The notes below the pieces were generated by a model. That model was not told where the DNA came from. It made no database searches and was given only the letters and a program-made list of their open reading frames with translations. From Anthoceros angustus (Eukaryota; Plantae; Anthocerotophyta): DNA of 64,000 nt. Position 1 is the stretch's first letter; every line of letters begins with the position of its first letter. The position numbers were made by a program, and so were the translations under genes. Positions 19,459-58,284 of the stretch are shown piece by piece. The stretch spans positions 260,369 through 324,368 of the forward strand of contig MU008178.1 of NCBI GenBank assembly GCA_010909165.1, given 5' to 3'.

Positions 19459-22400
19459 ATGGACGGGGACCTGGACATGGAGATGGAGATGAGCACCGCC
19501 TCCTCGACTCTGCCTGCCCGGTGCGTTGCGTTCTTCTTTTTTTTTTTTAAATTTTAATTCCCCTCTTTGTTCATCTCTTCTTCTGCTCTTCCGGCCGGTT
19601 GCAAGGGCAAGGAGGGCGGGTGTAATGAGATTGTCATCTGTCTTGGATTGCAGGTACGCACACGCGTGCGAGCGGCATGGTGTGCTTCCGCACCATTCCA
19701 TTTGTCTTGCCATTGCAAAGGTGAGCGCTTTTTCTGCAGCATTGGGAAGCTGGAGAGGTGGAATTCTTTCTGGGACTGCTCACAGCCTTTCTTTGCATGC
19801 TGTATGTTCAGATGAGGTTGCATCCCAGCGCATCGGAATTGGAGTTGGTGGTGGACCAACTGGTGGATGAGGATGTAGCCCCTATTGTAGATCTTCTGGC
19901 CGCTGCAGCAGGGAGTGAGGAGCTTACAGCCGTCGATGTCTCCCATAACACCGCAGCGTCCTGCCTGGACGGGATTGTGTTCATGCACCTGCTGCGTGCT
20001 GCTGGCTCCAAGCTTAGGACTGTGGGGCTCAGGAACAGCGCTTTTAGTCGGGAAGCGCTCAGGTTGGCTCGCCATCAGCTGCTGGCACCACCCGCATCCT
20101 CCTCTTCTGCTTCTCGTCATGGCCCATGCTAATAACTCGATGCTGTTCCTGATTTAGGGATCTTTTTCAAGGAGGGATCTTGTCTACGAGTCTGGATATG
20201 AGTGTCTCCCGAGTACGGAACATGGATATGACGGGCAATTTTCCACTGCTGCATACCTTGACGTTGGACTACACCTTCCCGATCACGCACTTGCCAGAGG
20301 GATGCTTTAAGGGAATGCCACATCTCGCCAGGCTTTCCATGTGTGGTACAGACATAGCCAATCTGTGGACGACGTGTGCTGCCCTCGTCAAACTCCCCCG
20401 CCTCGTGGAGCTGCGCTTCCAGAAGAAGTGTCTCTGCTGTCAAGGGACTGGCCAGTGTAGGAGTCAAGCCAAGATCAGGCACCACATGGATTGGCTTCCT
20501 ACCTTGGACGACTTGGGTTTCTTCGAAGTGCAGTCGTCCCGGTTTCCCACAACTGAGGATGAAGAGTCTATAAGTATGTTCTCCGACGACGATTCTGCTA
20601 CGCAGGCTAGGCAGGCTCGTACAGAGAGTGGGAACACCTCAACTGCTCCCGCAGATGACTCAGCTCTCATGGATATTGGATCTGGAGAGCAAGAAAGCTC
20701 TGAGGACCTTTTGGAACCTGACCTTGATGAACTGTCGGGGACTATGAGCGCCAGTAGTCATGCATCCACAGAGCCTTCAGATGATATTGACAGAATGGAT
20801 TTTGGAAGAAGTGAAGGAGTTGGTAGCTCAGGGGACGAGGGAGAAGAGCCTGCTATGCCATCAAGGGGAGGCACTTCATTTGGACTGCGGGTTATCCACA
20901 CCTCACCCATCTGTTTTCAGAAACACTACAGGGAATTCATGGTGGCAAATCTGAAGGGCCTCAAAGTCCTCGATAACGTGTGCATCTATGAGAAGGAGAG
21001 GGATCTTGCTCAACAGGTTTGCACCGATCGATTTGAAAGAATGGCCAACAACAGGAGGGAAGATGAGAATGTGTTTGAGATACTGAGGCATCGTGAGATG
21101 GGTAGCGGAGCAACTCTACGCAGATCAGGTGCAGTCCGCAGGACTCGCAGTAGTGCTGGATTCTCCAGATCCCTCTGTGCTGCAAAAGTGGCATCATGTT
21201 CTTGGCCATCCACCACTCCTATATGTCGGTTTAAAAAGTCAAATTTCGATATTAACAGAAGGTGCAGAGCACGTCAATTTGAGTATCATCCCACAGAACC
21301 ATCGTATATGGTGTTTGGCACGCTTCATGGAGAGGTCGTGGTGGTGAATCATGAAAGTGACAAAGTGGTGGGCTATGTACCATCCATCGGTGTGTCGCAC
21401 AGCATATTGGGACTTTGCTGGCTAAACAAAGACCCCAGCAAGGTGAAATTTCTACTACCCTCAAATTCGTTCTACTTACTGTGATAAGTGTAATAGTTTG
21501 CCCTTACTTGTGGTTTGTTTCGCTGTGCAGCTCATTGCCGGCTCAGACAATGGCTCACTACGATTGTATGACGTGAACCACATGCATCGAACAATTGTAC
21601 TGCCTGGACGGAGTGACAGCAGACTGAGCACCCGGGGTTCAAGCAGTTTCTGGTCAGCACATGCTGGCATGACCTCTCGCACCCGTCGCAGTCCGACAAT
21701 ATACACATATGATGACTTTGAGCAGTTAACGTCAGTGCATATTAATTGCACAGATGACTACTTCCTTGCTAGTGGGTATTCAAAGCATGTCGGCCTGTAT
21801 GATCTCCGAACAGGGAAGCGGCTGCAGATCTTTTCAGATCTGCATCAGGAGCACATAAATGTAGTGAAGTTTGCTCATCACTCGCCTCATCTATTTGCCA
21901 CCTCTTCTTTCGACAGAGACATCAAAATGTGGGACATAAGGCAGAAGGCAGTTAAGCCGATCTACACAGTTCAAAGTGCCAAAGGAAATGTAATGGTGTG
22001 CTTCTCTCAAGACGACCACTACCTTTTGTCATCAGCTGTTGACAATGAGGTACAGTGTAGCTGAATTGAGCTTCAAGTGAGTCAGTACCATTCTCTCAAA
22101 ATTTAATCAAGAACTTCAAAGTTTCTGAACGTATCATCTGAAATTTGATTGGTTGCAGGTACGGCAGCATCTGTCTGTGGATGGCAGATTGCATATGATG
22201 TTTGACATCGCTCCCACTGGTAGCAGTCAGAATTACACACGCTCTTACTATATGAATGGAAGGGATTACATAATCACAGGAAGTTGTGAGGAGAATGTTG
22301 TTCGCATTTGCTGTGCACAGACAGGGAGGCGTCTTCGGGATGTGGCGTTGGAGGTATGTTACTTTGGTGGTGGATGTACCAGGTCAACAAAGCATATGTA

Positions 22401-22821
22401 GTTTGCGACAATCTAACACAGGCATGTGCTATGTTGCAGGGTCGTGGTCTGAAAAATTCCCTTTACGTGCAGTCATTGAGAGGAGACCCTTTTAAGGTGA
22501 TTGTACGTTTTCCGTGCCCTTTTGTGATCACATTATGCAGGCTCTACCCGGTTGTTTGATAAGTCGTTTTTGTGCAGGCTTTCCATTTCTGTGTGTTGGT
22601 TGCTTACAACCTTCCTCATTCTCGATCTGAGATAGTGAAGGTGAGTGGACTAATACCCTTTGCGATCTGCTACTGCTGGTCCACTCCTACTGCGTTGGTA
22701 ATGTTGTGACTAAACAATTTGACTGGAATTGCCTTAGGTCAACCTTCTGTCCAGTGAAGGGCACAAAAGGGGTGGCCAAGCAGAACCGCAGTACACATCT
22801 CTTGCGAGCATGGGAGCTTGA
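19459..22821 (+). CDS. DHU1: LRR + WD40 (DWD-type) protein resembling Arabidopsis DHU1 (DWD hypersensitive to UV-B 1)
   Basis: RYAHACERHGVLP; LRR segment LHTLTLD..LPEGCF.GMP.L..LSMC; CFQKHYREFMVANL..LKVLDN; RARQFEYHP.EPS.MVFGTL.GEVVVVNHE; LIAGSDNGSL; SFDRD.KMWD.R; YTRSYYMNGRDYII.GSCEE; SLRGDPF; stop TGA at 22819-22821. Consistent GT-AG exon chain. Confidence 0.85.
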
Positions 22822-23422
22822 TTCATTTGGAGCCTGAAGTTTATTTGGCCATATTTACTTCAGCCTGTTTTGAACTTTGTGAAATAGTCCATCCTTAGTT
22901 CTTTGGTCCCCGCCTCGCTGTCCCGGCCTTGACATTCAAGAATGTGATTGATTCTGCTGTCAAGCCCCAGACTGCGTTGACATAACTCGGTGCATCACAC
23001 TCATTTTCCCTGGAGTCTCTTGGAATCTGCTGGAAGGGTTCGGCGGGTGGGGAGGTTTGTGATGGGTTGTTGTTAGACATTCAAACCTATCCTTAACATC
23101 TTTTCCCATGAATTGCGTGGGAGTGACTTGGACCGACTAGGTGCTGAAGTCCGTCCGGATTTAATGCGGAGGTACGTTGTGTGGACTCCAGAGCACGTTC
23201 GTGGGCTCCAACGCACGGCATTGGGCCTTGTGTGGGCTAAGCCGGGTGGGGTATAGAGGAGTTTCTTCAAAATCAGAAATTTGCTGGATGACATGTGGAC
23301 AAGGATTGTTACGACGGTAGAATCACAATCCCATCATCCTATATCGGTTCTGCATTAACGAAAATTTTTAAAAAGACATTGCTACAATATAAAAGATAGA
23401 CAAAGATTCAAGGGTTTCTCTC

Positions 23423-23908
23423 TCATAGCACTTCTTCCATAAATGCATCCGTATCTTCACTAGCTTCATAAGAGGAAGATTTGAGCCTAAGTATCTGAAC
23501 CACTCGCCCACCAAAAAAAAAATAGATACCAGGAAGAATATTGTTTACAGCAGTCGGAAAATAGAATGATTTTCCATTCCAATTGTCCTCATAAGTTGAA
23601 TGGATTACTATTCTATCAAGGAAATTTGGAATCAGCATGTTATTCTTGTCATCCTTCATCAAATACATCAAGCTGTTTTGATAGGCCGGTACACTCCTGT
23701 CACCAACCTGTGCTGGACCATGAACATCTGTCCCTAGTCTCCCATTTCCCAACATGACTTGCGAATATTTACTTGTCATACCAAGGTTGCCTCCCCATTC
23801 CAGGTGATTAAATAGTTCAAGAGAAAGAAAGCCATCAAATATTGACGTTGGCCAATAACCAACTGCTTGTCCATTAATAAACAACCATAAATTAGCCGTG
23901 TTTGAATC
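23423..23908 (-). pseudogene. Terminal exon of a neprosin-family gene, convergent with DHU1 and cut off from its own upstream exons
   Basis: Open frame DSNTANLWLFINGQAVGYWPTSIF..EWGGNLG..MLGNG..FFFGG..EEVL*, matching neprosin D...GNWWL..VGYWP..WGG..MGSG..FYGG. Upstream sequence switches to inverted DHU1 at ~23959. Confidence 0.85.
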
Positions 23909-23958
23909 CTGGATCACATTGTCCAAACTAAGAATGAGTATGGAGAGCCAAAAAGTCC

Positions 23959-24645
23959 AGATCGCAAAGGGTATCACTCCACTCACCTTCACTATCTCAG
24001 GTCGAGAACGAGGAAGGTTGTAAGCAACCAACACACATAAATGGAAAGCCTGCACAGAAACAACTTATCATACAACTAGGTAGAGCCCGTATAATGTGAT
24101 GACAAAAGGGCACAATCACCTTGAAAGGGTCTCCTCTCAATGTCTGCATTTAAAGGGAATTTTTCATACCACGACCTTACAACATAGCACATGCCTGCGT
24201 TAGATTGTTGCAAACTACCTAGTTGTATGATAGTATCATACAACTAGGTAGAGCCCGTATAATGTGATGACAAATGGGCACAATCACCTTAAAAGGGTCT
24301 CCTCTCAATGACCGCACGTAAAGGGAATTTTTCATACCACGACCTTGCAACATAGCGCATGCCTGCGTTAGATTGTTGCAAACTACATATGCTTTGTTGA
24401 CCTGGTAAATCCACCATCAAAGTAACATACCTCCAACGCCACATCCCAAAGACGCCTCCCTGTGTGTGCACAAAGAAATCGTCGACATTCTCCTCACAAC
24501 TTCATGTGATTATGTAATGCCTTCCATTCATATAGTAAGAGCGTAATGATCGCTACTGGGAGCCATGTCAAACATCATATGCAATATGCCATCCACAAAA
24601 GATGTTGCCGACGTGCAACCAATCAAATTTCGGATGATACGTTTA
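23959..24645 (-). pseudogene. Inverted copy of DHU1-like 3' exons with an internal ~170-bp duplication
   Basis: Reverse complement matches 22123-22690 (QHL..DG.LHMMFD, ITGSCEEN, GRG.KNSL, AFH.CVLVAYNLP). 24065-24218 is repeated at 24234-24390. Confidence 0.9.
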
Positions 24646-25715
24646 GATTTCTTCGCACATCTTCTCTCCAACCACCTCATCCGCAAGGACCTCAAATTAA
24701 GATACCTTCGTCTCACTTGGTCCCCATTTCAAAAGGAGGAGTTTTGTGTCAATCCTCCTTTTGGTTTCTAAACTTGTGCCCGCTATCAACTTAGTTCTCT
24801 TCTTTCCTTCAAACTCCGTAAACTCAATTTAGTTAATTGTTAGCTCGCATCACCTCGGGATTGAGACGATGCATGAAAGGCGTTCTTAGGCGGCGATTCG
24901 TGTACGAGGCTAGGGCTCTCTCTACCAAGATGGCTGTTAATCGATATTAGCTAGATAGTTCTATAATGAGGGAGAAAGATTTAGGCAAATGTTTACGATG
25001 TGAGACGATTCCTATCACGGAGTCTTTTTAGATAGACTTGACCATCCGGCTATAATCTATCGGGTTGGATAATCGAAATGAGCAACTTTTGTGTCTAGTT
25101 TGTCGTTTGCAAATAGGTTACAACTTTTCACATCCCGTGAAAGATGGCTTGATTACGATCGTGGTGCAAGTATGCGCGGACATGGTCATAGATACCACCA
25201 AACCTAATTGAAGAGATCACAAGATCTCAACGCAAATGGAGATCAATGTCATGAGTTTTCACCTTCGACCGCCGCCTTTGCCTCAGCTCGAGTGGATCAT
25301 GCTACCGCTAATTGTATTTTTGATCCAACTTTGGAACTCCACAATAGAGAACCTTGGGAAAGATGATTAATCAGAACAAAGGTGCCGGAACAATTTGGGG
25401 TACATCAATATAGTTAGTTGTGATGGACTTGGATCATGTGATTGATAACCCTCATCCAATGATTTTTTTTGTGTTTTAATATTATTTTAACATTATCGCT
25501 CCCAATTCCAAACCCAATCGCCAAAGAAAAAAGAAGATGGTCTTTTATGCCTGAAACATATTGTACTCAATATTTAATTAAATATTAAATATATTTATTA
25601 TCGAGAGTTTGGAATGGAGAAGGCTATATATATGTAGACTTGGGTCTTAAGTCCTCATCCTTTTCGGTCAGGATAAGGTATATGATTATTTGTGATAGAA
25701 AATAGAATTGTCACC

Positions 25716-27627
25716 ATGTTTGTTTGGTTACTTGTATGCTTGTTTAATGTGTCCATATTGTATCACAATGGAGTTGTGATGGCAAACATATTGAGTCTAC
25801 CCCTTGGATGATGCCAACTTCCTCTTAACCAATTTTCAAAGGCCATTCCTCGAATCGCATAATGTATTCCACTTGTTCTACTTTATATTTGTTTGATCCA
25901 ATAGTCTGCTCATCAATGTGCATGTGATTATACAAACGATATTTCTTTTGTTTTCAATGGAGTGATTATGCATGTGACGAACGATAATTCTTTGGTGAGT
26001 GTCCTGCACTTTCGGATGGTACAATCGTAGATTGCGTGAAGATAGAAGATCAATTAACGTTACAACATCCACTTTTGAAGGACATGTTATACAAGTATGT
26101 ATTTATATTCAAGTTACAAGTCATTCTTGTAATCAACAATATCTAGAACATTCAAGTATGGATATTAATATAGTTTTGTTTTGCGAAACCACCGGTTTCA
26201 CTAAGACATAATTATGTGGAGTCCACGAATGTCAAACGTGTAATCCAAATTTATGAACAAGAAGTGGGTTCATGTCCAAAAGGTACCATTCCAATTCAAA
26301 GGTTCACTTACGAGCAAATGAATAGAAGTATAGAAGTGAAGAGGAGAGTCGACATAAGTCGCGAGGTGAAGAGGAGAGTCGACAATGGACGGAGGTCTCT
26401 CCTCATGTTGAAGATGATGGCTTTTTATTTTGAGGTATACTATTCATGGTCCACATTCCATTTTGTTTACACTTAAGGGTATTTGCACGATACTAATGAG
26501 GATAAATTTGCACGGTGATACTAAATATGAATTGACTCGTATGTTTATGTGAGATACAGGCCGTATACTGTACAACAACAAGACTACTTTTATGGAGTGC
26601 GGTGATTAGCATTTGGGATCCGGGAGAGAGAGGTCCAAATGATTTCTCAAGCTCATATATTCGTCTTGAAAGCCGTGGAGACTATGGCGAATATAATGGT
26701 GTTGATATTGGATGGCATGTAAGTCAAAAGGGTATAGTATTTGTTTGTTTTTATAAGCGCAAATGATACATGTACTTATTTTTCTCGCTTGTTGCAATTG
26801 CAGAAATTTCCATTTTGTATTCAAATGACCCTCTACCTCGTTTGTACATTGGATATAAGGTTAGTTCATACACTCATGTGCGTTCCTATATTTAATTATA
26901 TTATTTTGAAAATCAGTTGGGTTCCAAACAACAATCCTTTCATCTTATGTGCGTCCATGTACAACGGGTGTTTTAACTTGTTTTGCGGTTTGTGCAAACT
27001 AATCCGCATTTGTGTTCGTGGTGCTTTCCTCACGATTATGAGGGGACAACTATAAATGCTCGGATAAGCAAAGTAAGTATAACAATCTTTTATCAACAAT
27101 TAGACAACAAAATGGACTTATTGACTCTCCATACTCATTCTTAGTTTGGACAATGTGATCCAGGATTCAAACACGGCTGATTTATGGTTGTTTATTAATG
27201 GACAAGCGGTTGGTTATCGACATCAATATTTGATGGCTTTCTTTCTCTTGAACTATTTAATCACCGGAATGGGAGGCAACCTTGGTATGACAAGTAAATA
27301 TTCGCAAGTCATGTTGGGAAATGGGAGACTAGGGACGATGCTCATGGTCCAAAGAGAGACAGGAGTGTACCGCCTATCAAAAACGGCTTGATGTATTTGA
27401 TGAAGGATGACAAGAATAACATGCGATTCCAAATTTCCTTGATAGAATAGTAATCCATTCAACTTATGAAGACAATTGGAATGGAAAATCATTCTATGTT
27501 CCAGTAGAACAATATTCTTCCGGTATCCGGTTTTTTGGTGGGCGAGTGGTTCGGATACCTTAGTCTCAAATCTTCCTCTTATGAAGCTAGTGAAGATACG
27601 GATGCATTTATGGAAGAAGTGCTATGA
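25716..27627 (+). CDS. Neprosin-like gene copy 1 (signal peptide + activation peptide + neprosin domain); frame broken as assembled
   Basis: MFVWLLVCLFNVSILY; SDGTIVDCVKIEDQLTLQHPLFEGHVIQ; CPKGTIPIQR; AVISIWDPVV..SQAHI..NGVDIGWH; PRLYIGY; GCFNLFC.GFVQTN; VGYWP; WGGN. Indels may be assembly errors. Confidence 0.75.
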
Positions 27628-28205
27628 GAGAAACCCTTGAACCTTTGTCTATCTTTTATATTGTAGCAATGTCTTTTAAAATTTTTCGTTAACGCAGAAC
27701 CGATATAGGATCGGGGATTGTGATTCTAACGTCAGAACAATCCTTGTCCACATGTCATCCAGCAAATTTCTGATTTTGAAGAAACTCCTCTATACCCCAC
27801 CGGCTTAGCCCACGAAGGCCCAATGCGCGTTGGAGCCACCAAGTGGTAAGACAAACAATCCACACAACGCCTCCGCATTAAATCGACGGACTTCAACACC
27901 TAGTTGGTCCAAGTCACTCCCACGCAATTTATGGGAAAGCGGTGTTAAGGATAGTTTTGAATGTCTAACAACAACCCATCACAAACCTCCCCACCAGAAC
28001 CCTTGCAGCAGATTTCAAGAGACTCCGGGGAAAATGAGTGTGATGCACCGAGTTATGTCAACAGCATGGGGCTTGACAGATAATCAATCACGTTCTTGAA
28101 TGTCAAGGCGGACGGGAGGGACCAAAGAACTAAGGATGGACTATTTCACAAAGTTCAAAAAGCGTTGAAGTAAATATGGCGAAATAAACTTGGGCTCCAA
28201 ATGAA

Positions 28206-28868
28206 TCAAGGTCCCATGCTCGCAAGAGATGTATCTGGTTACCTTGGCCACCCTTTGTGCCCTTCACTAGATAGAAGGTTGACCTAAAGCAATTCTAGTC
28301 AAATTGTTTAGTCACAAGCACGACGCAGAGGAGTGGACCAGCGAGCAGATCGCAAAGGGTATCGGCCACTCACCTTCACTATCTCGGTCGAGAATGAGGA
28401 AGGTTGTAGGCAACCAACACACGAAATGGAAAGCTCGCATAAAAAGCGACTTATCATACAACTAGGTAGAGCCCGTATAATGTGATGACAAATGGGCACA
28501 ATCACCTTAAAAGGGTCTCCTCTCAATGACCGCACGTAAAGGGAATTTTTCATACCACGACCTTGCAACATAGCACATGCATAAGTTAGATTGTTGCAAA
28601 CTACATATGCTTTGTTGACTGGTAAATCCACCATCAAAGTAACATACCTCCAACGCCACATCCCAAAGACGCCTCCTGTGTGCATGTAAAAATACGTCGA
28701 CATTCTCCTCACAACTTCATGTGATTATGTAATGCCTTCCATTCATATAGTAAGAGCGTGTAATTATCGCTACGTGGGAGCCATGTCAAACATCATATGC
28801 AATATGCCATCCACAAAGCAGATGTTGCCGTCGCGTGCAACCAATCAAATTCGGATGATATGTTTAGA
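28206..28868 (-). pseudogene. Antisense DHU1-like 3' fragment, unit 1
   Basis: Reverse complement matches 22123-22821. Confidence 0.85.
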
Positions 28869-29936
28869 TTTCTTAGCATCTTCTCTCCAACCACCTCATC
28901 AAGGACCTCAAATTAAGATACCTTCGTCTCACTTGGTCCCCATTTCAAAAGGAGGAGTTTTGTGTCAATCCTCCTTTTGGTTTCTCGCCCAGCCCGCTAT
29001 CAACTTAGTTCTCTTCTTTCCTTCAAACTCCGTAAACTCAATTTAGTTAATTGTTAGCTCGCATCACCTCGTGATTGAGGCGGATGCGGCATGAAAGGCG
29101 TTCTTAGGCAGCCTGATTCGTGTACGAGGCGGCTAGGGCCTGTCTCTTACCAAGATGGTCATAATCGGATATTAGCTAGATAGTTCTATAATGAGGAGAA
29201 AGATTTAGGCAAATGTTTGCGATGTGAGACGATTCCTATCACGAGTCTTTTAGATAGACTTGACCGATCCGCTATAATCTATCGAGGTTGGATAATCGAA
29301 ATGAGCAACTTTTGTGTCTAGTTTGTCGTTTTGCAAATAGGTTACAACTTTTCACATCCCGTGAAAGATGGCTTGATTACGATCGTGGTGCAAGTATGCA
29401 AGGCAGACATGGTCATAGATACCACCAAACCTAATTGAAGAGATCACAAGATCTCAACGCAAATGGAGATCAATGTCATGAGTTTTCACCTTCGTCATCG
29501 ACTTTGCCTCCGGTTGAGTGGATCATGCTACCGCTAATTGTATTTTTGATCCAACTTTGGAACTCCCAATAGAGAACCTTGGGAAAGATGATTAATCAGA
29601 ACAAAGGTGCGGAACAATTTGGGGTACATCAATATAGTTAGTTGTGATGGACTTGGATCATGTGATTGATAACCCTCATCCAATGATTTTTTTGTGTTTT
29701 AATATTATTTTAACATTATCGCTCCCAATTCCAAACCCACGGCCAAAGAAAAAAGAAGATGGTCTTTTATGCAAACATATTGTACTCAATATTTAATTAA
29801 ATATTAAATATATTTATTATCGAGAGTTTGGAATGGAGAAGGCTATATATATGTAGACTTGGTCTTAAGTCCTCATCCTTTTCCAGTCTTGGGATAAGGT
29901 ATATGATTATTTGTGATAGAAAATAGAATTGTCACC

Positions 29937-38383: not shown

Positions 38384-40304
38384 ATGTTTGTTTGGTTACT
38401 TGTATGCTTGTTTAATGTGTCCATATTGTATCACAATGGAGTTGTGATGGCAAACATATTGAGTCTACCCCTTGGATGATGCCAACTTCCTCTTAACCAA
38501 TTTTCAAAAGGCCATTCCTCGAATCGCATAATGTATTCCACTTGTTCTACTTTATATTTGTTTGATCCAATAGTACATTCATCAATGTGCATGTGATTAT
38601 ACAAACGATATTTCTTTTGTTTTCAATGGAGTGATTATGCATGTGAATGACGATAATTCTTTGGTGAGTGTCCTGCGACTTTCGGATGGTACAATCGTAG
38701 ATTGCGTGAAGATAGAAGATCAATTAACGTTACAACATCCACTTTTTGAAGGACATGTTATACAAGTATGTATTTATATTCAAGTTACAAGTCATTCTTG
38801 TAATCAACAATATCTAGAACATTCAAGTATGGATATTAATATAGTTTTGTTTTTGCGAAACCACCGGTTTCACTAAGACATAATTATGTGGAGTCCACGA
38901 ATGTCAAACGTGCAATCCAAATTTATGAACAAGAAGTGGGTTCATGTCCAAAAGGTACCATTCCAATTCAAAGGTTCACTTACGAGCAAATGAATAGAAG
39001 TATAGAAGTGAAGAGGAGAGTCGACATAAGTCGCGAGGTGAAGAGGAGAGTCGACAATGGACGGAGGTCTCTCCTCATGTTGAAGATGATGGCTTTTTAT
39101 TTGAGGTATACTATTCATGGTCCACATTCCATTTTGTTTACACTTAAGGGTATTTGCACGATACTAATGAGGATAAATTTGCAGTGATACTAAATATGAA
39201 TTGACTCGTATGTTTATGTGAGATACAGATAATTGTACAACAACAAGACTACTTTTATGGAGCTGCGGTGATTAGCATTTGGGATCAGTTGTGAGAGAGG
39301 TCCAAATGATTTCTCAAGCTCATATATTCGTCTTGAAAGCCGGAGACTATGGCGAATATAATGGTGTTGATATTGGATGGCATGTAAGTCAAAAGGGTAT
39401 AGTATTTGTTTGTTTTTATAAGCGCAAATGATACATGTACTTATTTTTCTCGCTTGTTGCAATTGCAGAAATTTCCATTTTGTATTCAAATGACCCTCTA
39501 CCTCGTTTGTACATTGGATATAAGGTTAGTTCATACACTCATATGCGTTCCTATATTTAATTATATTATTTTTGAAAATCAGTTGGGTTCCAAACAACAA
39601 TCCTTTCATCTTATGTGGTCCATGTACAACGGTGTTTTAACTTGTTTTCTGGGTTTGTGCAAACTAATCCGCATTTGTGTTCGTGGTGCTTTCCTCACCG
39701 ATTATGAGGGACAACTATAAATGCTCGATAAGCAAAGTAAGTATAACAATCTTTTATCAACAATTAGACAACAAAATGGACTTATTGACTCTCCATACTC
39801 ATTCTTAGTTTGGACAATGTGATCCGGATTCAAACACGGCTGATTTATGGTTGTTTATTAATGGACAAGCGGTTGGTTATTGGCCGACATCAATATTTGA
39901 TGGCTTTCTTTCTCTTGAACTATTTAATCACCGGAATGGGAGGCAACCTTGGTATGACAAGTAAATATTCGCAAGTCATGTTGGGAAATGGGAGACTAGG
40001 GACTGATGTTCATGGTCCAGCACAGGTTGGTGACAGGAGTGTACCGGCCTATCAAAACAGCTTGATGTATTTGATGAAGGATGACAAGAATAACATGCTG
40101 ATTCCAAATTTCCTTGATAGAATAGTAATCCATTCAACTTATGAGGACAATTGGAATGGAAAATCATTCTATGTTCAGTAAACAATATTCTTCACAGTAT
40201 CCGGTTTTTTTTGGTGGGCGAGTGGTTCGAGATACCTTAGTCTCAAATCTTCCTCTTATGAAGCTAGTGAAGATACGGATGCATTTATGGAAGAAGTGCT
40301 ATGA
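38384..40304 (+). CDS. Neprosin-like gene copy 4
   Basis: Same motifs. The stretch GNGRLGTDVHGPAQVGDRSVPAYQNSLMYLMKDDKNNMLIPNFLDR is identical to the clean exon at 23423-23908. Confidence 0.78.
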
Positions 40305-44513: not shown

Positions 44514-45144
44514 GAGAGAAACCCTTGAACCTTTGTCTATCTTTTATATTGTAGCAATGTCTTTTAAAATTTTTCGTTAACGCAGAACCGATATAGGATC
44601 GGGATTGTGATTCTAACGTCGTAACAATCCTTGTCCACATGTCATCCAGCAAATTTCTGATTTTGAAGAAACTCCTCTATACCCCACCGGCTTAGCCCAC
44701 GCAAGGCCCAATGCGTGCGTTGGAGCCAGTGGTAAGACAAACAATCCACACAACGCGTACCTCCGCATTAAATCCGAAGCGGACTTCAACACCTAGTTGG
44801 TCCAAGTCACTCCCACGCAATTTATGGGAAGCGGTGTTAAGGATAGTTTTGAATGTCTAACAACAACCCATCACAAACCTCCCACCAACCCTTGCAGCAG
44901 ATTTCAAGAGACTCGGGGAAAATGAGTGTGATGCACCGAGTTATGTCAACGCGATGGCTTGACATGAGAATCAATCACGTTCTTGAATGTCAAGGCCGGA
45001 GGGACCAAAGAACTAAGGATGGACTATTTCACAAAGTTCAAAAACGTTGAAGTAAATATGGCGAAATAAACTTGGGCTCCAACGCACGGCATTGGGCCTT
45101 GTGTGGGCTAAGCCAGGTGGGGTATAGAGGAGTTTCTTCAAAAT

Positions 45145-45975
45145 CAGAAATTTCCATTTTGTATTCAAATGACCCTCTACCTCGTTTGTACATTGGATAT
45201 AAGGTTAGTTCATACACTCATGTGCGTTCCTATATTTAATTATATTATTTTGAAAATCAGTTGGGTTCCAAACAACAATCCTTTCATCTTATGTAGTCCA
45301 TGTACAACGGTGTTTTAACTTGTTTTGCGCTGGGTTTGTGCAAACTAATCCGCATTTGTGTTCGGTGGTGCTTTCCTCACGATTATGAGGGGACAACTAT
45401 AAATGCTCGGATAAGCAAAGTAAGTATAACAATCTTTTATCAACAATTAGACAACAAAATGGACTTATTGACTCTCCATACTCATTCTTAGTTTGGACAA
45501 TGTGATCCGTGATTCAAACACGGCTGATTTATGGTTGTTTATTAATGGACAAGCGGTTGGTTATTGGCCGACATCAATATTTGATGGCTTTCTTTCTCTT
45601 GAACTATTTAATCACCGGAATGGGAGGCAACCTTGGTATGACAAGTAAATATTAAAGTCATGTTGGGAAATGGGAGACTAGGGATGATGCTCATGGTCCA
45701 AAGACAGTTGGTGACAGGTGCGCCTATCAAAACGGCTTGATGTATTTGATGAAGGATGACAAGAATAACATGTCGATTCCAAATTTCCTTGATAGAATAG
45801 TAATCCATTCAACTTATGAAGACAATTGGAATGGAAAATCATTCTATGTTATCGTAACAATATTCTTCACAGTATCGGTTTTTTGGTGGGCGAGTGGTTC
45901 GATACCTTAGTCTCAAATCTTCCTCTTATGAAGCTAGTGAAGATAATGGATGCATTTATGGAAGAAGTGCTATGA
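45145..45975 (+). pseudogene. 5'-truncated neprosin-like copy (3' exons only)
   Basis: Starts at a CAGAAATTT junction with an inverted intergenic piece and runs to EEVL*. Confidence 0.8.
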
Positions 45976-46602
45976 GAGAGAAACCCTTGAACCTTTGTCT
46001 ATCTTTTATATTGTAGCAATGTCTTTTAAAATTTTTCAACGCAGAACCGATATAGGATCGATTGTGATTCTAACGTCGTAACAATCCTTGTCCACATGTC
46101 ATCCAGCAAATTTCTGATTTTGAAGAAACTCCTCTATACCCCACCGGCTTAGCCCACGCAAGGCCCAATGCGTGCGTTGGAGCCAGTGGTAAGACAAACA
46201 ATCCACACACAACCTCCGCATTAAATCCGAACGGACTTCAACACCTAGTTGGTCCAAGTCACTCCCACGCAATTTATGGAAACGGTGTTAAGGATAGTTT
46301 TGAATGTCTAACAACAACCCATCACAAACCTCCCCACCCGAACCCTTGCAGCAGATTTCAAGAGACTCAGAAAATGAGTGTGATGCACCGAGTTATGTCA
46401 GCGATGCAGGGGCAGCCGTAATCAATCACGTTCTTGAATGTCAAGGCCGGACAAATGAGGGACCAAAGAACTAAGGATGGACTATTTCACAAAGTTCAAA
46501 AAGCGTTGAAGTAAATATGGCGAAATAAACTTGGCTCCAAATGAATCAAGGTCCCATGCTCGCAAGATGTGTATCTGATTACGCTTGGCCACCCTTTGTG
46601 CC

Positions 46603-46935
46603 CTTCACTAGCTTCATAAGAGGAAGATTTGAGCCTAAGTATCAACCACTCGCCCACCAAAAAAATAGATACCGAAGAATATTGTTTACGCAATGGAAAA
46701 TAGAATGATTTTCCATTCCAATTGTCCTCATAAGTTGAATGGATTACTATTCTATCAAGGAAATTTGGAATCGATGTTATTCTTGTCATCCTTCATCAAA
46801 TACATCAAAATTTGCTTTGATAGGTACACTCCACCAAACCTGTGGACCATGAACATCCGTCCCTAGTCTCCCATTTCCCAACATGACTTAGTATTTACTT
46901 GTCATACCAAGGTTGCCTCCCCATTCCGGTGATTA
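46603..46935 (-). pseudogene. Inverted fragment of the neprosin last exon
   Basis: Same orientation as 23455-23810; bounded by CTTCACTAG and GGTGATTA junctions. Confidence 0.85.
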
Positions 46936-47960
46936 GCATTTGGGATCCAGTTGTGAGAGAGGTCCAAATGATTTCTCAAGCTCATATATTCGTCTTGAAA
47001 GCCGGAGACTATGGCGAATATAATGGTGTTGATATTGGATGGCATGTAAGTCAAAAGGGTATAGTATTTGTTTGTTTTTATAAGCGCAAATGATACATGT
47101 ACTTATTTTTCTCGCTTGTTGCAATTGCAGAAATTTCCATTTTGTATTCAAATGACCCTCTACCTCGTTTGTACATTGGATATAAGGTTAGTTCATACAC
47201 TCATGTGCGTTCCTATATTTAATTATATTATTTTGAAAATCAGTTGGGTTCCAAACAACAATCCTTTCATCTTATGATCCATGTACAACGGGTGTTTTAA
47301 CTTGTTTTGCTGGGTTTGTGCAAACTAATCCGCATTTGTGTTCGGTGGTGCTTTCCTCCTCGATTATGAGGGGACAACTATAAATGCTCGGATAAGCAAA
47401 GTAAGTATAACAATCTTTTATCAACAATTAGACAACAAAATGGACTTATTGACTCTCCATACTCATTCTTAGTTTGGACAATGTGATCCAGGATTCAAAC
47501 ACGGCTGATTTATGGTTGTTTATTAATGGACAAGCGGTTGGTGGCCGACATCAATATTTGATGGCTTTCTTTCTTGAACTATTTAATCACCGGAATGGGA
47601 GGCAACCTTGGTATGACAAGTAAATATTCAAGTCATGTTGGGAAATGGGAGACTAGGGATGCTCATGGTCCAAAGACAAGTTGGTGAGTGGAGTGTACCG
47701 CCTATCAAAAACGCGGCTTGATGTATTTGATGAAGGATGACAAGAATAACATCGATTCCAAATTTCCTTGATAGAATAGTAATCCATTCAACTTATGAAG
47801 ACAATTGGAATGGAAAATCATTCTATGTTATCATTGTAAACAATATTCTTCACAGTATCTGGTTTTTTGGTGGGCGAGTGGTTCGAGATACCTTAGTCTC
47901 AAATCTTCCTCTTATGAAGCTAGTGAAGATACGGATGCATTTATGGAAGAAGTGCTATGA
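46928..47960 (+). pseudogene. 5'-truncated neprosin-like copy starting at (A)VISIWDPVV
   Basis: ORF 46899-47093 shows the junction; downstream exons continue to EEVL*. Confidence 0.8.
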
Positions 47961-48519
47961 GAGAGAAACCCTTGAACCTTTGTCTATCTTTTATATTGTA
48001 GCAATGTCTTTTAAAATTTTTCGTTAACGAACCGATATAGGATCGATTGTGATTCTAACGTAACAATCCTTGTCCACATGTCATCCAGCAAATTTCTGAT
48101 TTTGAAGAAACTCCTCTATACCCCACCTTAGCCCACGCAAGGCCCAATGCCGTGCGTTGGAGGGTAAGACAAACAATCCACACAACGCATTACCTCCGCA
48201 TTAAACCGAACGGACTTCAACACCTAGTTGGTCCAAGTCACTCCCACGCAATTTATGGGAAGCGGTGTTAAGGATAGTTTTGAATGTCTAACAACAACCC
48301 ATCACAAACCTCCCCACCGAACCCTTGCGCAGATTTCAAGAGACTCGGGGAAAATGAGTGTGATGCACCGAGTTATGTCAACGCAGCTTGACAGTGAGAA
48401 TCAATCACGTTCTTGAATGTCAAGGGACTGAGGGGACCAAAGAACTAAGGATGGACTATTTCACAAAGTTCAAAAAGCGTTGAAGTAAATATGGCGAAAT
48501 AAACTTGGGCTCCAAATGA

Positions 48520-49853
48520 ATCAAGGTCCCATGCTCGCAAGAGATGTGTCTGTCGCTTGGCCACCCTTTGTGCCCTTCACTAGATAGAAGGTTGACCTAA
48601 AGCAATTCTAGTCAAATTGTTTAGTCACAACGTTACCGAAGAGGAGTGGACCAGCGAGCGATCGCAAAGGGTATCACTCACTCACCTTCACTATCTCGTG
48701 TCGAGAATGAGGAAGGTTGTAGGCAACCAACACACGAAATGGAAAGCGCGAAACAACTTATCATACAACTAGGTAGAGCCCGTATAATGTGATGACAAAT
48801 GGGCACAATCACCTTAAAAGGGTCTCCTCTCAATGCATTTAAAGGGAATTTTTCATACCACGACCTTGCAACATAGCACATGCTGCGTTAGATTGTTGCA
48901 AACTACCTAGTTGGTCCAAGTCACTCCCACGCAATTTATGGAAACGGTGTTAAGGATAGTTTTGAATGTCTAACAACAACCCATCACAAACCTCCCCACC
49001 CGAACCCTTGCAGCAGATTTCAAGAGACTCGGGGAAAATGAGTGTGATGCACCGAGTTATGTCAGCGATGCAGGGGCAGCCGTAATCAATCACGTTCTTG
49101 AATGTCAAGGCCGGACAAATGAGGGGACCAAAGAACTAAGGATGGACTATTTCACAAAGTTCAAAAAGCGTTGAAGTAAATATGGCGAAATAAACTTGGC
49201 TCCAAATGAATCAAGGTCCCATGCTCGCAAGAGATGTGTATCTGATTACGCTTGGCCACCCTTTGTGCCCTTCACTAGATAGAAGGTTGACCTAAAGCAA
49301 TTCTAGTCAAATTGTTTAGTCACAACGTTAAGCCGATAGGAGTGGACCAGCGATGAGATCGTAGTATCGTGCCTCACCTTCACTATCTCGTGTCGAGAAT
49401 GAGGAAGGTTGTAGGCAACCAACACACGAAATGGAAAGCACAAAAACGACTTATCATACAACTAGAGCCCGTATAATGTGATGACAAATGGGCACAATCA
49501 CCTTAAAAGGGTCTCCTCTCAATGACCGCACGTAAAGGGAATTTTTCATACCACGACCTTGCAACATAGCACATGCGTTAGATTGTTGCAAACTACATAT
49601 GCTTTGTTGACTGGTAAATCCACCATCAAAGTAACATACCTCCAACGCCACATCCCAAAGACGCCTCCCTGTGTGTGCACAAATCGTCGACATTCTCCTC
49701 ACAACTTCATGTGATTATGTAATGCCTTCCATTCATATATAGTAGGCGTGTGTAATTACTGACTGGGAGCCATGTCAAACATCATATGCAATATGCCATC
49801 CACAACAGATGTTGCCGTCGTGCAACCAATCAAATTCGATGATACGTTTAGAT
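48520..49853 (-). pseudogene. Antisense DHU1-like 3' fragments (partial 48520-48908, full 49209-49853) separated by a duplicated intergenic piece
   Basis: Reverse complement matches the DHU1 3' end; jump at CCTAGTTG 48906-48913. Confidence 0.8.
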
Positions 49854-50926: not shown

Positions 50927-52847
50927 ATGTTTGTTTGGTTACTTGTATGCTTGTTTAATGTGTCCATATTGTATCACAATGGAGTTGTGATGGCAAACAT
51001 ATTGAGTCTACCCCTTGGATGATGCCAACTTCCTCTTAACCAATTTTCAAAGGCCATTCCTCGAATCGCATAATGTATTCCACTTGTTCTACTTTTATAT
51101 TTGTTTGATCCAATAGTCTGCTCATCAATGTGCATGTGATTATACAAACGATATTTCTTTTGTTTTCAATGGAGTGATTATGCATGTGGAATGACGATAA
51201 TTCTTTGGTGAGTGTCCTGCGACTTTCGGATGGTACAATCGTAGATTGCGTGAAGATAGAAGATCAATTAACGTTACAACATCCACTTTTGAAGGACATG
51301 TTATACAAGTATGTATTTATATTCAAGTTACAAGTCATTCTTGTAATCAACAATATCTAGAACATTCAAGTATGGATATTAATATAGTTTTGTTTTGCGA
51401 AACCACCGGTTTCACTAAGACATAATTATGTGGAGTCCACGAATGTCAAAGCGTGCAATCCAAATTTATGAACAAGAAGTGGGTTCATGTCCAAAAGGTA
51501 CCATTCCAATTCAAAGGTTCACTTACGAGCAAATGAATAGAAGTATAGAAGTGAAGAGGAGAGTCGACATAAGTCGCGAGGTGAAGAGGAGAGTCGACAA
51601 TGGACGGAGGTCTCTCCTCATGTTGAAGATGATGGCTTTTTATTTGAGGTATACTATTCATGGTCCACATTCCATTTTGTTTACACTTAAGGGTATTTGC
51701 ACCGATACTAATGAGGATAAATTTGCGGTGATACTAAATATGAATTGACTCGTATGTTTATGTGAGATACAGCCGTATACTCTGGCAACAACAAGACTAC
51801 TTTTATGGGTAGTGCGGTGATTAGCATTTGGGATCCAGTTGTGAGAGAGGTCCAAATGATTTCTCAAGCTCATATATTCGTCTTGAAAGCCGTGGAGACT
51901 ATAAATATAATGGTGTTGATATTGGATGGCATGTAAGTCAAAAGGGTATAGTATTTGTTTGTTTTTATAAGCGCAAATGATACATGTACTTATTTTTCTC
52001 GCTTGTTGCAATTGCAGAAATTTCCATTTTGTATTCAAATGACCCTCTACCTCGTTTGTACATTGGATATAAGGTTAGTTCATACACTCATGTGCGTTCC
52101 TATATTTAATTATATTATTTTGAAAATCAGTTGGGTTCCAAACAACAATCCTTTCATCTTATGTGAGTCCATGTACAACGGTGTTTTAACTTGTTTTGCG
52201 CTGGGTTTGTGCAAACTAATCCGGCATTTGTGTTCGTGGTGCTTTCCTCACCGATTATGAGGGACAACTATAAATGCTCGGATAAGCAAAGTAAGTATAA
52301 CAATCTTTTATCAACAATTAGACAACAAAATGGACTTATTGACTCTCCATACTCATTCTTAGTTTGGACAATGTGATCCGTGATTCAAACACGGCTGATT
52401 TATGGTTGTTTATTAATGGACAAGCGTTGGTTATTAGCCGACATCAATATTTGATGGCTTTCTTTCTCTTGAACTATTTAATCACACGGAATGGGAGGCA
52501 ACCTTGGTATGACAAGTAAATATTCGCAAGTCATGTTGGGAAATGGGAGACTAGGATGATGCTCATGGTCCAAAGACAGTTGGTGGAGTGTACCGCCTAT
52601 CAAAGCTTGATGTATTTGATGAAGGATGACAAGAATAACATGCTGATTCCAAATTTCCTTGATAGAATAGTAATCCATTCAACTTATGAAGACAATTGGA
52701 ATGGAAAATCATTCTATGTTCATCAGAACAATATTCTTCACAGTATCGGTTTTTTTGGTGGGCGAGTGGTTCGAGATACCTTAGTCTCAAATCTTCCTCT
52801 TATGAAGCTAGTGAAGATACGGATGCATTTATGGAAGAAGTGCTATG
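50927..52847 (+). CDS. Neprosin-like gene copy 6
   Basis: Same exon motifs as copy 1. Confidence 0.75.
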
Positions 52848-57159: not shown

Positions 57160-58284
57160 GCACCGATACTAATGAGGATAAACGGTGATACTAAATATGA
57201 ATTGACTCGTATGTTTATGTGAGATACTGGTACTGACAACAACAAGACTACTTTTATGGAGTGTGCGGTGATTAGCATTTGGGATCCAGTTGTGAGAGGT
57301 CCAAATGATTTCTCAAGCTCATATATTCGTCTTGAAAGCCAGACTATGGCGAATATAATGGTGTTGATATTGGATGGCATGTAAGTCAAAAGGGTATAGT
57401 ATTTGTTTGTTTTTATAAGCGCAAATGATACATGTACTTATTTTTGTTGCAATTGCAGAAATTTCCATTTTGTATTCAAATGACCCTCTACCTCGTTTGT
57501 ACATTGGATATAAGGTTAGTTCATACACTCATATGCGTTCCTATATTTAATTATATTATTTTGAAAATCAGTTGGGTTCCAAACAACAATCCTTTCATCT
57601 TATGTGCATCCATGTACACGGGTGTTTTAACTTGTTTTGCGCTGGGTTTGTGCAAACTAATCCGCATTTGTGTTCGTGGTGCTTTCCTCGATTATGAGGG
57701 ACAACTATAAATGCTCGGATAAGCAAAGTAAGTATAACAATCTTTTATCAACAATTAGACAACAAAATGGACTTATTGACTCTCCATACTCATTCTTAGT
57801 TTGGACAATGTGATCCGTGATTCAAACACGGCTGATTTATGGTTGTTTATTAATGGACAAATGATTGGTTATTGGCCGACATCAATATTTGATGGCTTTC
57901 TTTCTCTTGAACTATTTAATCACCGGAATGGGAGGCAACCTTGGTATGACAAGTAAATATTCAAGTCATGTTGGGAAATGGGAGACTAGGGACAGATGCT
58001 CATGGTCCGACAGGTTGGTGGAGTGTCTACCTATCAAAACGGCTTGATGTATTTGATGAAGGATGACAAGAATAACATCGATTCCAAATTTCCTTGATAG
58101 AATAGTAATCCATTCAACTTATGAAGACAATTGGAATGGAAAATCATTCTATGTTCCAACATAAACAATATTCTTCACAGTATCGGTTTTTTTTTGGTGG
58201 GCGAGTGGTTCGACACTTAGTCTCAAATCTTCCTCTTATGAAGCTAGTGAAGATACGGATGCATTTATGGAAGAAGTGCTATGA
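57160..58284 (+). pseudogene. 5'-truncated neprosin-like copy (~1.2-kb internal tandem duplication)
   Basis: The 3' flank TTAACGCA switches to CCGATACTAATGAGG, an internal position of the gene. Confidence 0.8.

Follow-up and report, generated by a model that had tools for sequence, protein, structure and literature searches.

We analyzed a 64,000-nucleotide stretch of the Anthoceros angustus genome (contig MU008178.1; here called the window and numbered from its first letter). The region around positions 25716 to 27627 belongs to copy 1 of a 4.2-kb tandem unit and forms its active-site part. Each unit carries a neprosin-family gene on the forward strand, followed by a copy of the 3' part of a WD40 (DHU1-like) gene on the reverse strand. 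The original of this WD40 piece lies at about 21500 to 23300 on the forward strand. The units are about 95% alike, with gaps making up about two-thirds of the differences. The array and its associated fragments are laid out as follows.

25000 to 64000, forward strand: tandem array with a unit of about 4.2 kb, eight full and three partial or rearranged units, reaching past the window end
Starts near 25000, 29224, 33434, 37666, 41891, 50211, 54450 and 59857, forward strand: the eight full units
45145, 46927 and 57160, forward strand: the three partial or rearranged units
27700 to 29200, reverse strand: unit spacer, holding the inverted 3' part of the neighboring WD40 (DHU1-like) gene
23426 to 23908 (within 23300 to 23959), reverse strand: m0, an inverted fragment consisting of the last exon alone, with a clean 161-codon frame
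46603 to 46935, reverse strand: m7, a second inverted last-exon fragment, inside a rearranged part of the array

The array is irregular at 45070 to 48906 and at 57160, where truncated units are joined head to tail; an 84-base inverted scrap at 45070 to 45153 lies in the same irregular zone as m7. Unit 4 (39938 to 40176) and m0 (23557 to 23795) are 99% identical in inverted orientation over 239 bases, and unit 4 has substitutions in common with m0 and m7 that are absent from the other units. This likeness reflects either gene conversion between the inverted fragment and the unit or misplacement of m0 reads on unit 4 during short-read polishing. Between 22124 and 25077, the 3' end of the WD40 gene gives way to the last neprosin exon in inverted orientation, after which comes unit sequence with an inverted copy of that 3' end, an arrangement from which read-through transcription could yield double-stranded RNA.

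The gene within the unit is a very divergent neprosin-family gene of seven exons, in which a signal-like first exon precedes a Neprosin_AP pro-domain and a Neprosin domain. We set the exon boundaries of copy 1 by comparison with the neprosin-like genes on two contigs, L001 and L002, which are described below. The exons and the codons of interest, all on the forward strand, are as follows.

25716 to 25757, forward strand: candidate first exon, an ATG and a hydrophobic stretch resembling a signal peptide; 3' end placed at a phase-fitting GT donor
26000 to 26094, forward strand: exon 1, opening part of the pro-domain (…SDGTIVDCVKIEDQ…), matching Neprosin_AP positions 5 to 32
26174 to 26433, forward strand: exon 2, the remaining pro-domain with C-P-K-G-T-I-P, matching Neprosin_AP positions 48 to 96
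26560 to 26718, forward strand: exon 3, encoding the first catalytic-domain strands, aligned to neprosin residues 153 to 191
26656 to 26664, forward strand: codons TAT-ATT-CGT at neprosin Q173-I174-W175, changing Q173 to Tyr and W175 to Arg
26704 to 26706, forward strand: GAT (Asp) where neprosin has catalytic Glu188, in 10 of 10 copies
26804 to 26859, forward strand: exon 4, 56 bases, identical across all copies; the frame of the relatives begins two bases past the canonical acceptor
26917 to 27072, forward strand: exon 5, the G-C-F-N-L-F-C-A-G-F-V-Q-T-N segment, aligning to neprosin residues 217 to 239
27164 to 27626, forward strand: last exon (exon 6), garbled at hot spots in the assembly
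27278 to 27280, forward strand: AAC (Asn) where neprosin has catalytic Glu297, in 13 of 13 copies, with the Glu293 position kept

Profile searches bore out the assignment to the neprosin family made in the initial annotation, with the two Pfam domains matched on separate exons. PF03080 (Neprosin) scored 39.5 bits on the last exon and 23.8 bits on exon 5 (cut-off, 22 bits). PF14365 (Neprosin activation peptide) matched exons 1 and 2, scanned in copy 4 (38670 to 38765 and 38846 to 39103), with E values of 1e-6 and 6e-7; each exon falls below the 39.2-bit cut-off because each is only part of the domain. These two matches agree with the annotated retention of the propeptide. The N terminus also appears signal-peptide-like, as annotated, since a Met and a hydrophobic stretch are present in all eight full copies, with a predicted splice join to exon 1. 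In the copy alignment, canonical splice sites are kept at every intron, and the exon phases fit throughout, exon 4 excepted.

We read the residue correspondences from exon-wise HMMER sequence alignments to solved neprosin (7zu8 and 7zvb). The numbering of chain 7zu8_A is the residue numbering of the neprosin paper, since F169, L171, Q173, W175, T186 and E188 all fall at the right places. In exon 3, V-D-I-G-W aligns to I187-E188-A-G-W, and in the last exon, E-W-G-G-N aligns to E293-W-G-G-E297. Because these alignments anchor both positions, we regard the changes of E188 to Asp and of E297 to Asn as real. The claim that every copy is substituted at both dyad positions thus holds, and the Glu188/Glu297 dyad of a neprosin-type (G3) glutamic peptidase is replaced by Asp/Asn in every copy. 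The codons are exact at the positions first reported. The 27-base stretch around GAT, which reads Y-N-G-V-D-I-G-W-H, occurs unchanged 10 times on the forward strand, and the context GG-AAC-CTT-GGT, with AAC at 27278 to 27280 in copy 1 and at 23786 to 23788 in m0, occurs 13 times (11 on the forward strand and 2 on the reverse strand). Both codons are invariant and lie in nonvarying stretches of the copy alignment. A read-derived contig from DNA run X1 matched the assembly letter for letter over 26626 to 26951, and a second one, over 27063 to 27521, had five mismatches that left AAC untouched. The annotation that all copies read WGGNLG stood for the Asn codon, found in all 13 copies, but an undisturbed TGG (Trp) before GG-N is present only in m0 and m7. 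The forward copies, 11 of 11, are two bases short just upstream of GG-N, so that in the assembly the Asn codon is out of frame with VGYWP; m0 is the only fragment with GG-N in frame from the upstream motifs, and its frame closes with a 27-residue tail. Since the dyad substitutions are common to all copies and to both inverted fragments, loss of the dyad predates the amplification. We infer that the active-site changes arose at that earlier stage, when the fold motifs, the splice sites and the reading frame of the gene were still intact.

The substitutions extend beyond the dyad. The neprosin paper reports that E188Q and E297Q mutants are inactive, that Q173 and W175 are essential, for the oxyanion, that T186 holds E188, and that E297 is the general base. 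The residues H134, Y136 and Y214 hold the dyad. Exon 3 contains two error hot spots, and the 50 bases between them fit either of two frames, each of which is self-consistent in two copies. The frame reading P-N-D-F-S-S-S-Y-I-R-L has neprosin as its top three PDB matches, collinear over residues 153 to 191 at a weak E value of 0.17. We rejected the second frame, which contains the motif SQ, because it matches nothing in the PDB, whereas the other matches neprosin at the right place. In the neprosin-aligning frame, Q173 is Tyr, W175 is Arg, T186 is Gly and L171 is Ser, so that the Gln173/Trp175 pair of the neprosin-type peptidases is absent; in exon 5, Y220 is Phe (alignment to residues 217 to 239). 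The loss of catalytic residues is therefore deeper than the initial annotation saw, with Q173 and W175 replaced as well. The annotated list of retained fold motifs stood for CP.GTIP, IW.P, GC.NL.C.GFVQ, VGYWP and FGG but not for SQ, which comes from the less supported frame and is S-Y-I-R in the neprosin-aligned one. H134, Y136 and Y214 correspond to error hot spots or to the junctions of exons 2/3 and 4/5, and comparison by eye with L001 and L002 suggests that the His of this set is lost. With the dyad, Q173, W175 and T186 all replaced, the predicted product could not be a peptidase by the neprosin mechanism and, if made, would be a nonpeptidase homologue of neprosin.

None of the assembled copies has all exons in frame. 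Exon 4 has a two-base offset in every copy when the strong donor (26718/26719) and the only acceptor are used, and this stretch, the same in every copy, contains no hot spots; of the frame problems, only the offset is not attributable to sequencing error. A weaker donor 15 bases downstream (26733/26734) would keep the frame and add a five-residue insertion. The other frame breaks all lie at CG or CWG hot spots, where base-calling error is possible. One unit has TAG for the Trp codon of V-G-Y-W-P (52429 to 52443), which stands beside a CCG site and may be an error rather than a real stop. Comparison of m0 with the array majority gave few changes, 4 synonymous and 8 nonsynonymous, and about half of the latter are hot-spot misalignments, leaving about 4 that are credible.

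In the copy alignment, 32% of columns within two bases of a CG and 39% of those near a CWG are variable, compared with 3.8% elsewhere; this is an eight- to ten-fold clustering across 25000 to 64000 and consists mostly of indels, with indels or gaps in 127 of the 203 variable columns. All copies agree over AT-rich stretches hundreds of bases long, and the single-copy m0, which lies next to an expressed gene, has 161 clean codons. Deamination of methylated cytosine gives transitions, not indels, and we ruled out real hypermutation at methylated cytosines because indels dominate rather than C-to-T changes. The pattern presumably reflects errors of long-read base calling at 5-methylcytosine, left uncorrected in repeats that were beyond the reach of short-read polishing. 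The copy differences thus look technical, a long-read signature of dense cytosine methylation, and because the hot spots look like base-calling error, most of the frame breaks should not be taken as real. Read from this error pattern, the units appear to be densely methylated at CG and CHG. Methylation at CG and CWG is typical of silenced repeats. In this assembly, clustering of differences at these sites may indirectly mark repeats as methylated and probably silenced, and repeat frame breaks at CG/CWG sites should not be read as mutations.

We compared the locus with contigs from a DNA run (X1) and an RNA run (X2) of the same sample. The X1 contigs on the gene have a word depth of 100 to 270, compared with about 6 to 49 on the flank, although word depth does not equal copy number, and they end at hot spots. 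Relative to copy 1, X1 restores the frame in exons 1 and 2 and is one base short in exon 3 (at 26676) at full depth, a result that would fit either the true sequence or errors in common with the long reads. We suspect that X1 shares the long-read errors because it has indels at CWG sites relative to the clean m0. We did not adopt X1 as the truth for the hot spots; it is not decisive there, having an unrecorded platform, breaks at the same hot spots and these CWG indels. In X2, a single 2.2-kb contig at depth 56 represents the DHU1-like gene and skips 238 bases with CT..AC ends, which correspond to GT..AG on the other strand. This contig cross-maps to the array copies at about 88 to 93% likeness. 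The same RNA sample had zero contigs and zero depth on 25073 to 27830 and next to none of the words of the neprosin-family gene. A moderately expressed neighbor was thus assembled, but the gene present in many copies was not. Because X2 is one sample and the family is often tissue specific, we describe this result as no expression rather than as silence. The proposal that the gene had been amplified to high dosage is not supported by these results, since X2 has no contig on the array although a spliced transcript of its neighbor is present, and since every assembled copy is frame-broken, at exon 4 in error-free sequence.

We searched the clean last exon exhaustively against 1.84 billion representative proteins with HMMER and obtained 17 matches at an E value of ≤0.001, the best at 38% identity; no D/N-type orthologue was present among these representatives. 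The nearest matches are exon-sized calls on contigs L001 and L002 of Logan sample SRR33208241. These contigs contain two neprosin-like genes (L001, 2594 to 4400; L002, 1455 to 3015), of which only the last exons had previously been called as proteins. BLASTP with 40-residue pieces against L001 gave no match. Among the more distant matches, the residue at position 297 is E in seven and N, Y, Q, K and D in one each; several of these matches are gene models that fuse tandem neighbors.

The reading we favor, though with confidence only a little better than even, is that a dead-enzyme paralogue of neprosin has been amplified into a methylated macrosatellite that is silent or only conditionally expressed. 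The unit would encode, or would once have encoded, a nonpeptidase neprosin homologue, a kind that makes up over half of PF03080. Unequal crossing-over is the probable route by which the array grew, acting on a unit that had also taken up an antisense piece of the neighboring gene. The CG and CWG sites of the array look densely methylated, and most likely it does not yield product at high dosage; its expression is probably absent or restricted to certain conditions, and its reading frame may already be broken at exon 4. Since the fold motifs, the splice sites and a long frame outlasted the change of six active-site positions, the gene probably passed through a period as a noncatalytic protein under selection before the amplification. 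Against the silent or decaying side of this reading, the first exon and splice sites are kept in all eight full copies and the 161-codon frame of m0 is intact, which fits a still-functional gene.

Retention of the Met and hydrophobic exon, the pro-domain, the fold motifs and the splice sites in all full copies also speaks for a working high-dosage battery for a secreted pseudo-peptidase. Such a protein would keep the fold and the cleft and bind peptides or a partner protease, as a decoy, trap or binding protein, and would be expressed in a tissue or condition outside the sampled one. The clean last-exon frame of m0 and the expression of dyad-less Arabidopsis relatives (PMC12806958) are in line with this possibility, as is the position of every frame break other than that of exon 4 at CG/CWG hot spots, where the breaks may be base-calling errors; the X1 contigs do restore the frame in exons 1 and 2. 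We nonetheless consider it distinctly less probable than the methylated macrosatellite, given that the array has no RNA contig while its neighbor is seen at depth 56, that the exon 4 offset lies in error-free sequence, and that each unit contains an antisense fragment of an expressed gene. The probable CG and CWG methylation, of the kind typical of silenced repeats, points the same way, and the lack of a D/N-type orthologue in the 1.84 billion representatives gives no sign of long-term conservation. The exon 4 offset, being common to all copies, would suit a plain pseudogene array that lost its function before amplification and whose active-site substitutions are neutral decay. The one-base shortfall in exon 3 of X1 at full depth, the TAG in one unit, the absence of RNA in X2 and a ratio of about 4 synonymous to 4 credible nonsynonymous changes between the array and m0, which is not clearly constrained, are further points in its favor. 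Yet the six active-site changes are accompanied by the survival of C-P-x-G-T-I-P, I-W-x-P, G-C-x-N-L-x-C-x-G-F-V-Q, V-G-Y-W-P, E-W-G-G, F-G-G and the 161-codon frame, a pattern of selective loss rather than general decay. Canonical splice sites are likewise kept at every intron, and we judge the pseudogene array unlikely.

An enzyme with new chemistry, in which Asp at position 188 and the kept Glu293 or another residue catalyze hydrolysis or another reaction in a rebuilt cleft, seems very improbable. An acidic residue does stay at 188, Glu293 is kept, and glutamic peptidase families do vary in their dyads, as with Q/E in the eqolisins. The position of the general base (297) is Asn, however, the oxyanion and assistant residues Q173 and W175 are both gone, and even conservative swaps (E188Q and E297Q in neprosin and Q107E in SCP-B) abolish activity. 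More speculatively, the locus could be a conditionally expressed battery, for example reproductive or stress specific, of twenty or more near-identical genes for a secreted noncatalytic neprosin whose Asp/Asn/Tyr/Arg cleft binds proline-rich peptides or traps a partner; this would be a lineage-specific system with no database orthologue, and we are doubtful of it. Returning to the dead-enzyme paralogue, if its protein is made, it would be a well-defined case among the large, unexplained group of neprosin-like proteins that are unable to be glutamic peptidases. The array gene with its six active-site changes and its close relatives with full sites would then be well matched for studying the role of the fold in the absence of catalysis.

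Compared with Nepenthes neprosin (a glutamic prolyl endopeptidase; PDB 7ZU8 and 7ZVA-C), the array gene has the same succession of a signal-like exon, a Neprosin_AP domain and a Neprosin domain, aligns collinearly over residues 153 to 191, 217 to 239 and 255 to 327, and is about 30 to 38% identical in the best-conserved exon. It keeps F169, I174, G190-W191, C-x-G-F-V-Q-T-N, V-G-Y-W-P and E293-W-G-G. It differs in having E188 as Asp, E297 as Asn, Q173 as Tyr, W175 as Arg, T186 as Gly and Y220 as Phe, in the 27-residue tail past F-G-G, and in the offset of exon 4. The genes on L001 and L002 have the same exon structure and boundaries as the array gene, the pro-domain motif I-V-D-C-V-K-I-E-D-Q-L-T and M-G-N-G-R-x-G after the dyad. 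Unlike the array gene, they keep S-Q-x-W, the Glu188 equivalent (I-E-I-G-W and A-E-V-G-W) and W-G-G-E, have exon 4 in phase, and are single genes on their contigs. Because these relatives keep all of the residues that are substituted in the array gene, the active-site loss is specific to the array paralogue.

The initial annotation knew of no described system like this one, a statement that the literature overturns. Both Glu residues are kept in only 184 of 427 (43%) representative PF03080 sequences (Ting et al., bioRxiv 10.1101/2022.02.22.481544), which makes dyad-less members the majority of the family. In Arabidopsis, clusters I, II and IV of the DUF239 family are without E/E or Q/E dyads; eight cluster IV genes lie in strict tandem within 20 kb, have seven exons and are all predicted to be extracellular, and another mechanism or function was suggested for these genes (Verges et al. 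2022, PMC12806958). The Arabidopsis members of this family are mostly seed specific, and the dyad-less ones are expressed (PMC12806958). From these two data sets, the class of tandem, secreted, dyad-less neprosin-like genes has already been described; neprosin did not come up in a check of the published hornwort genome. The array resembles Arabidopsis cluster IV in being neprosin-like, without an E/E or Q/E dyad, in tandem in one orientation and in seven exons, whereas the dyad positions are mostly S/Q there and D/N here. Cluster IV copies are diverged paralogues; the array units are near-identical 4.2-kb repeats, more numerous, each with an antisense fragment of a neighboring gene. The new elements are the particular D/N and Y/R residue set, the contrast to close relatives with full sites, and the macrosatellite form with an antisense gene fragment in each unit.
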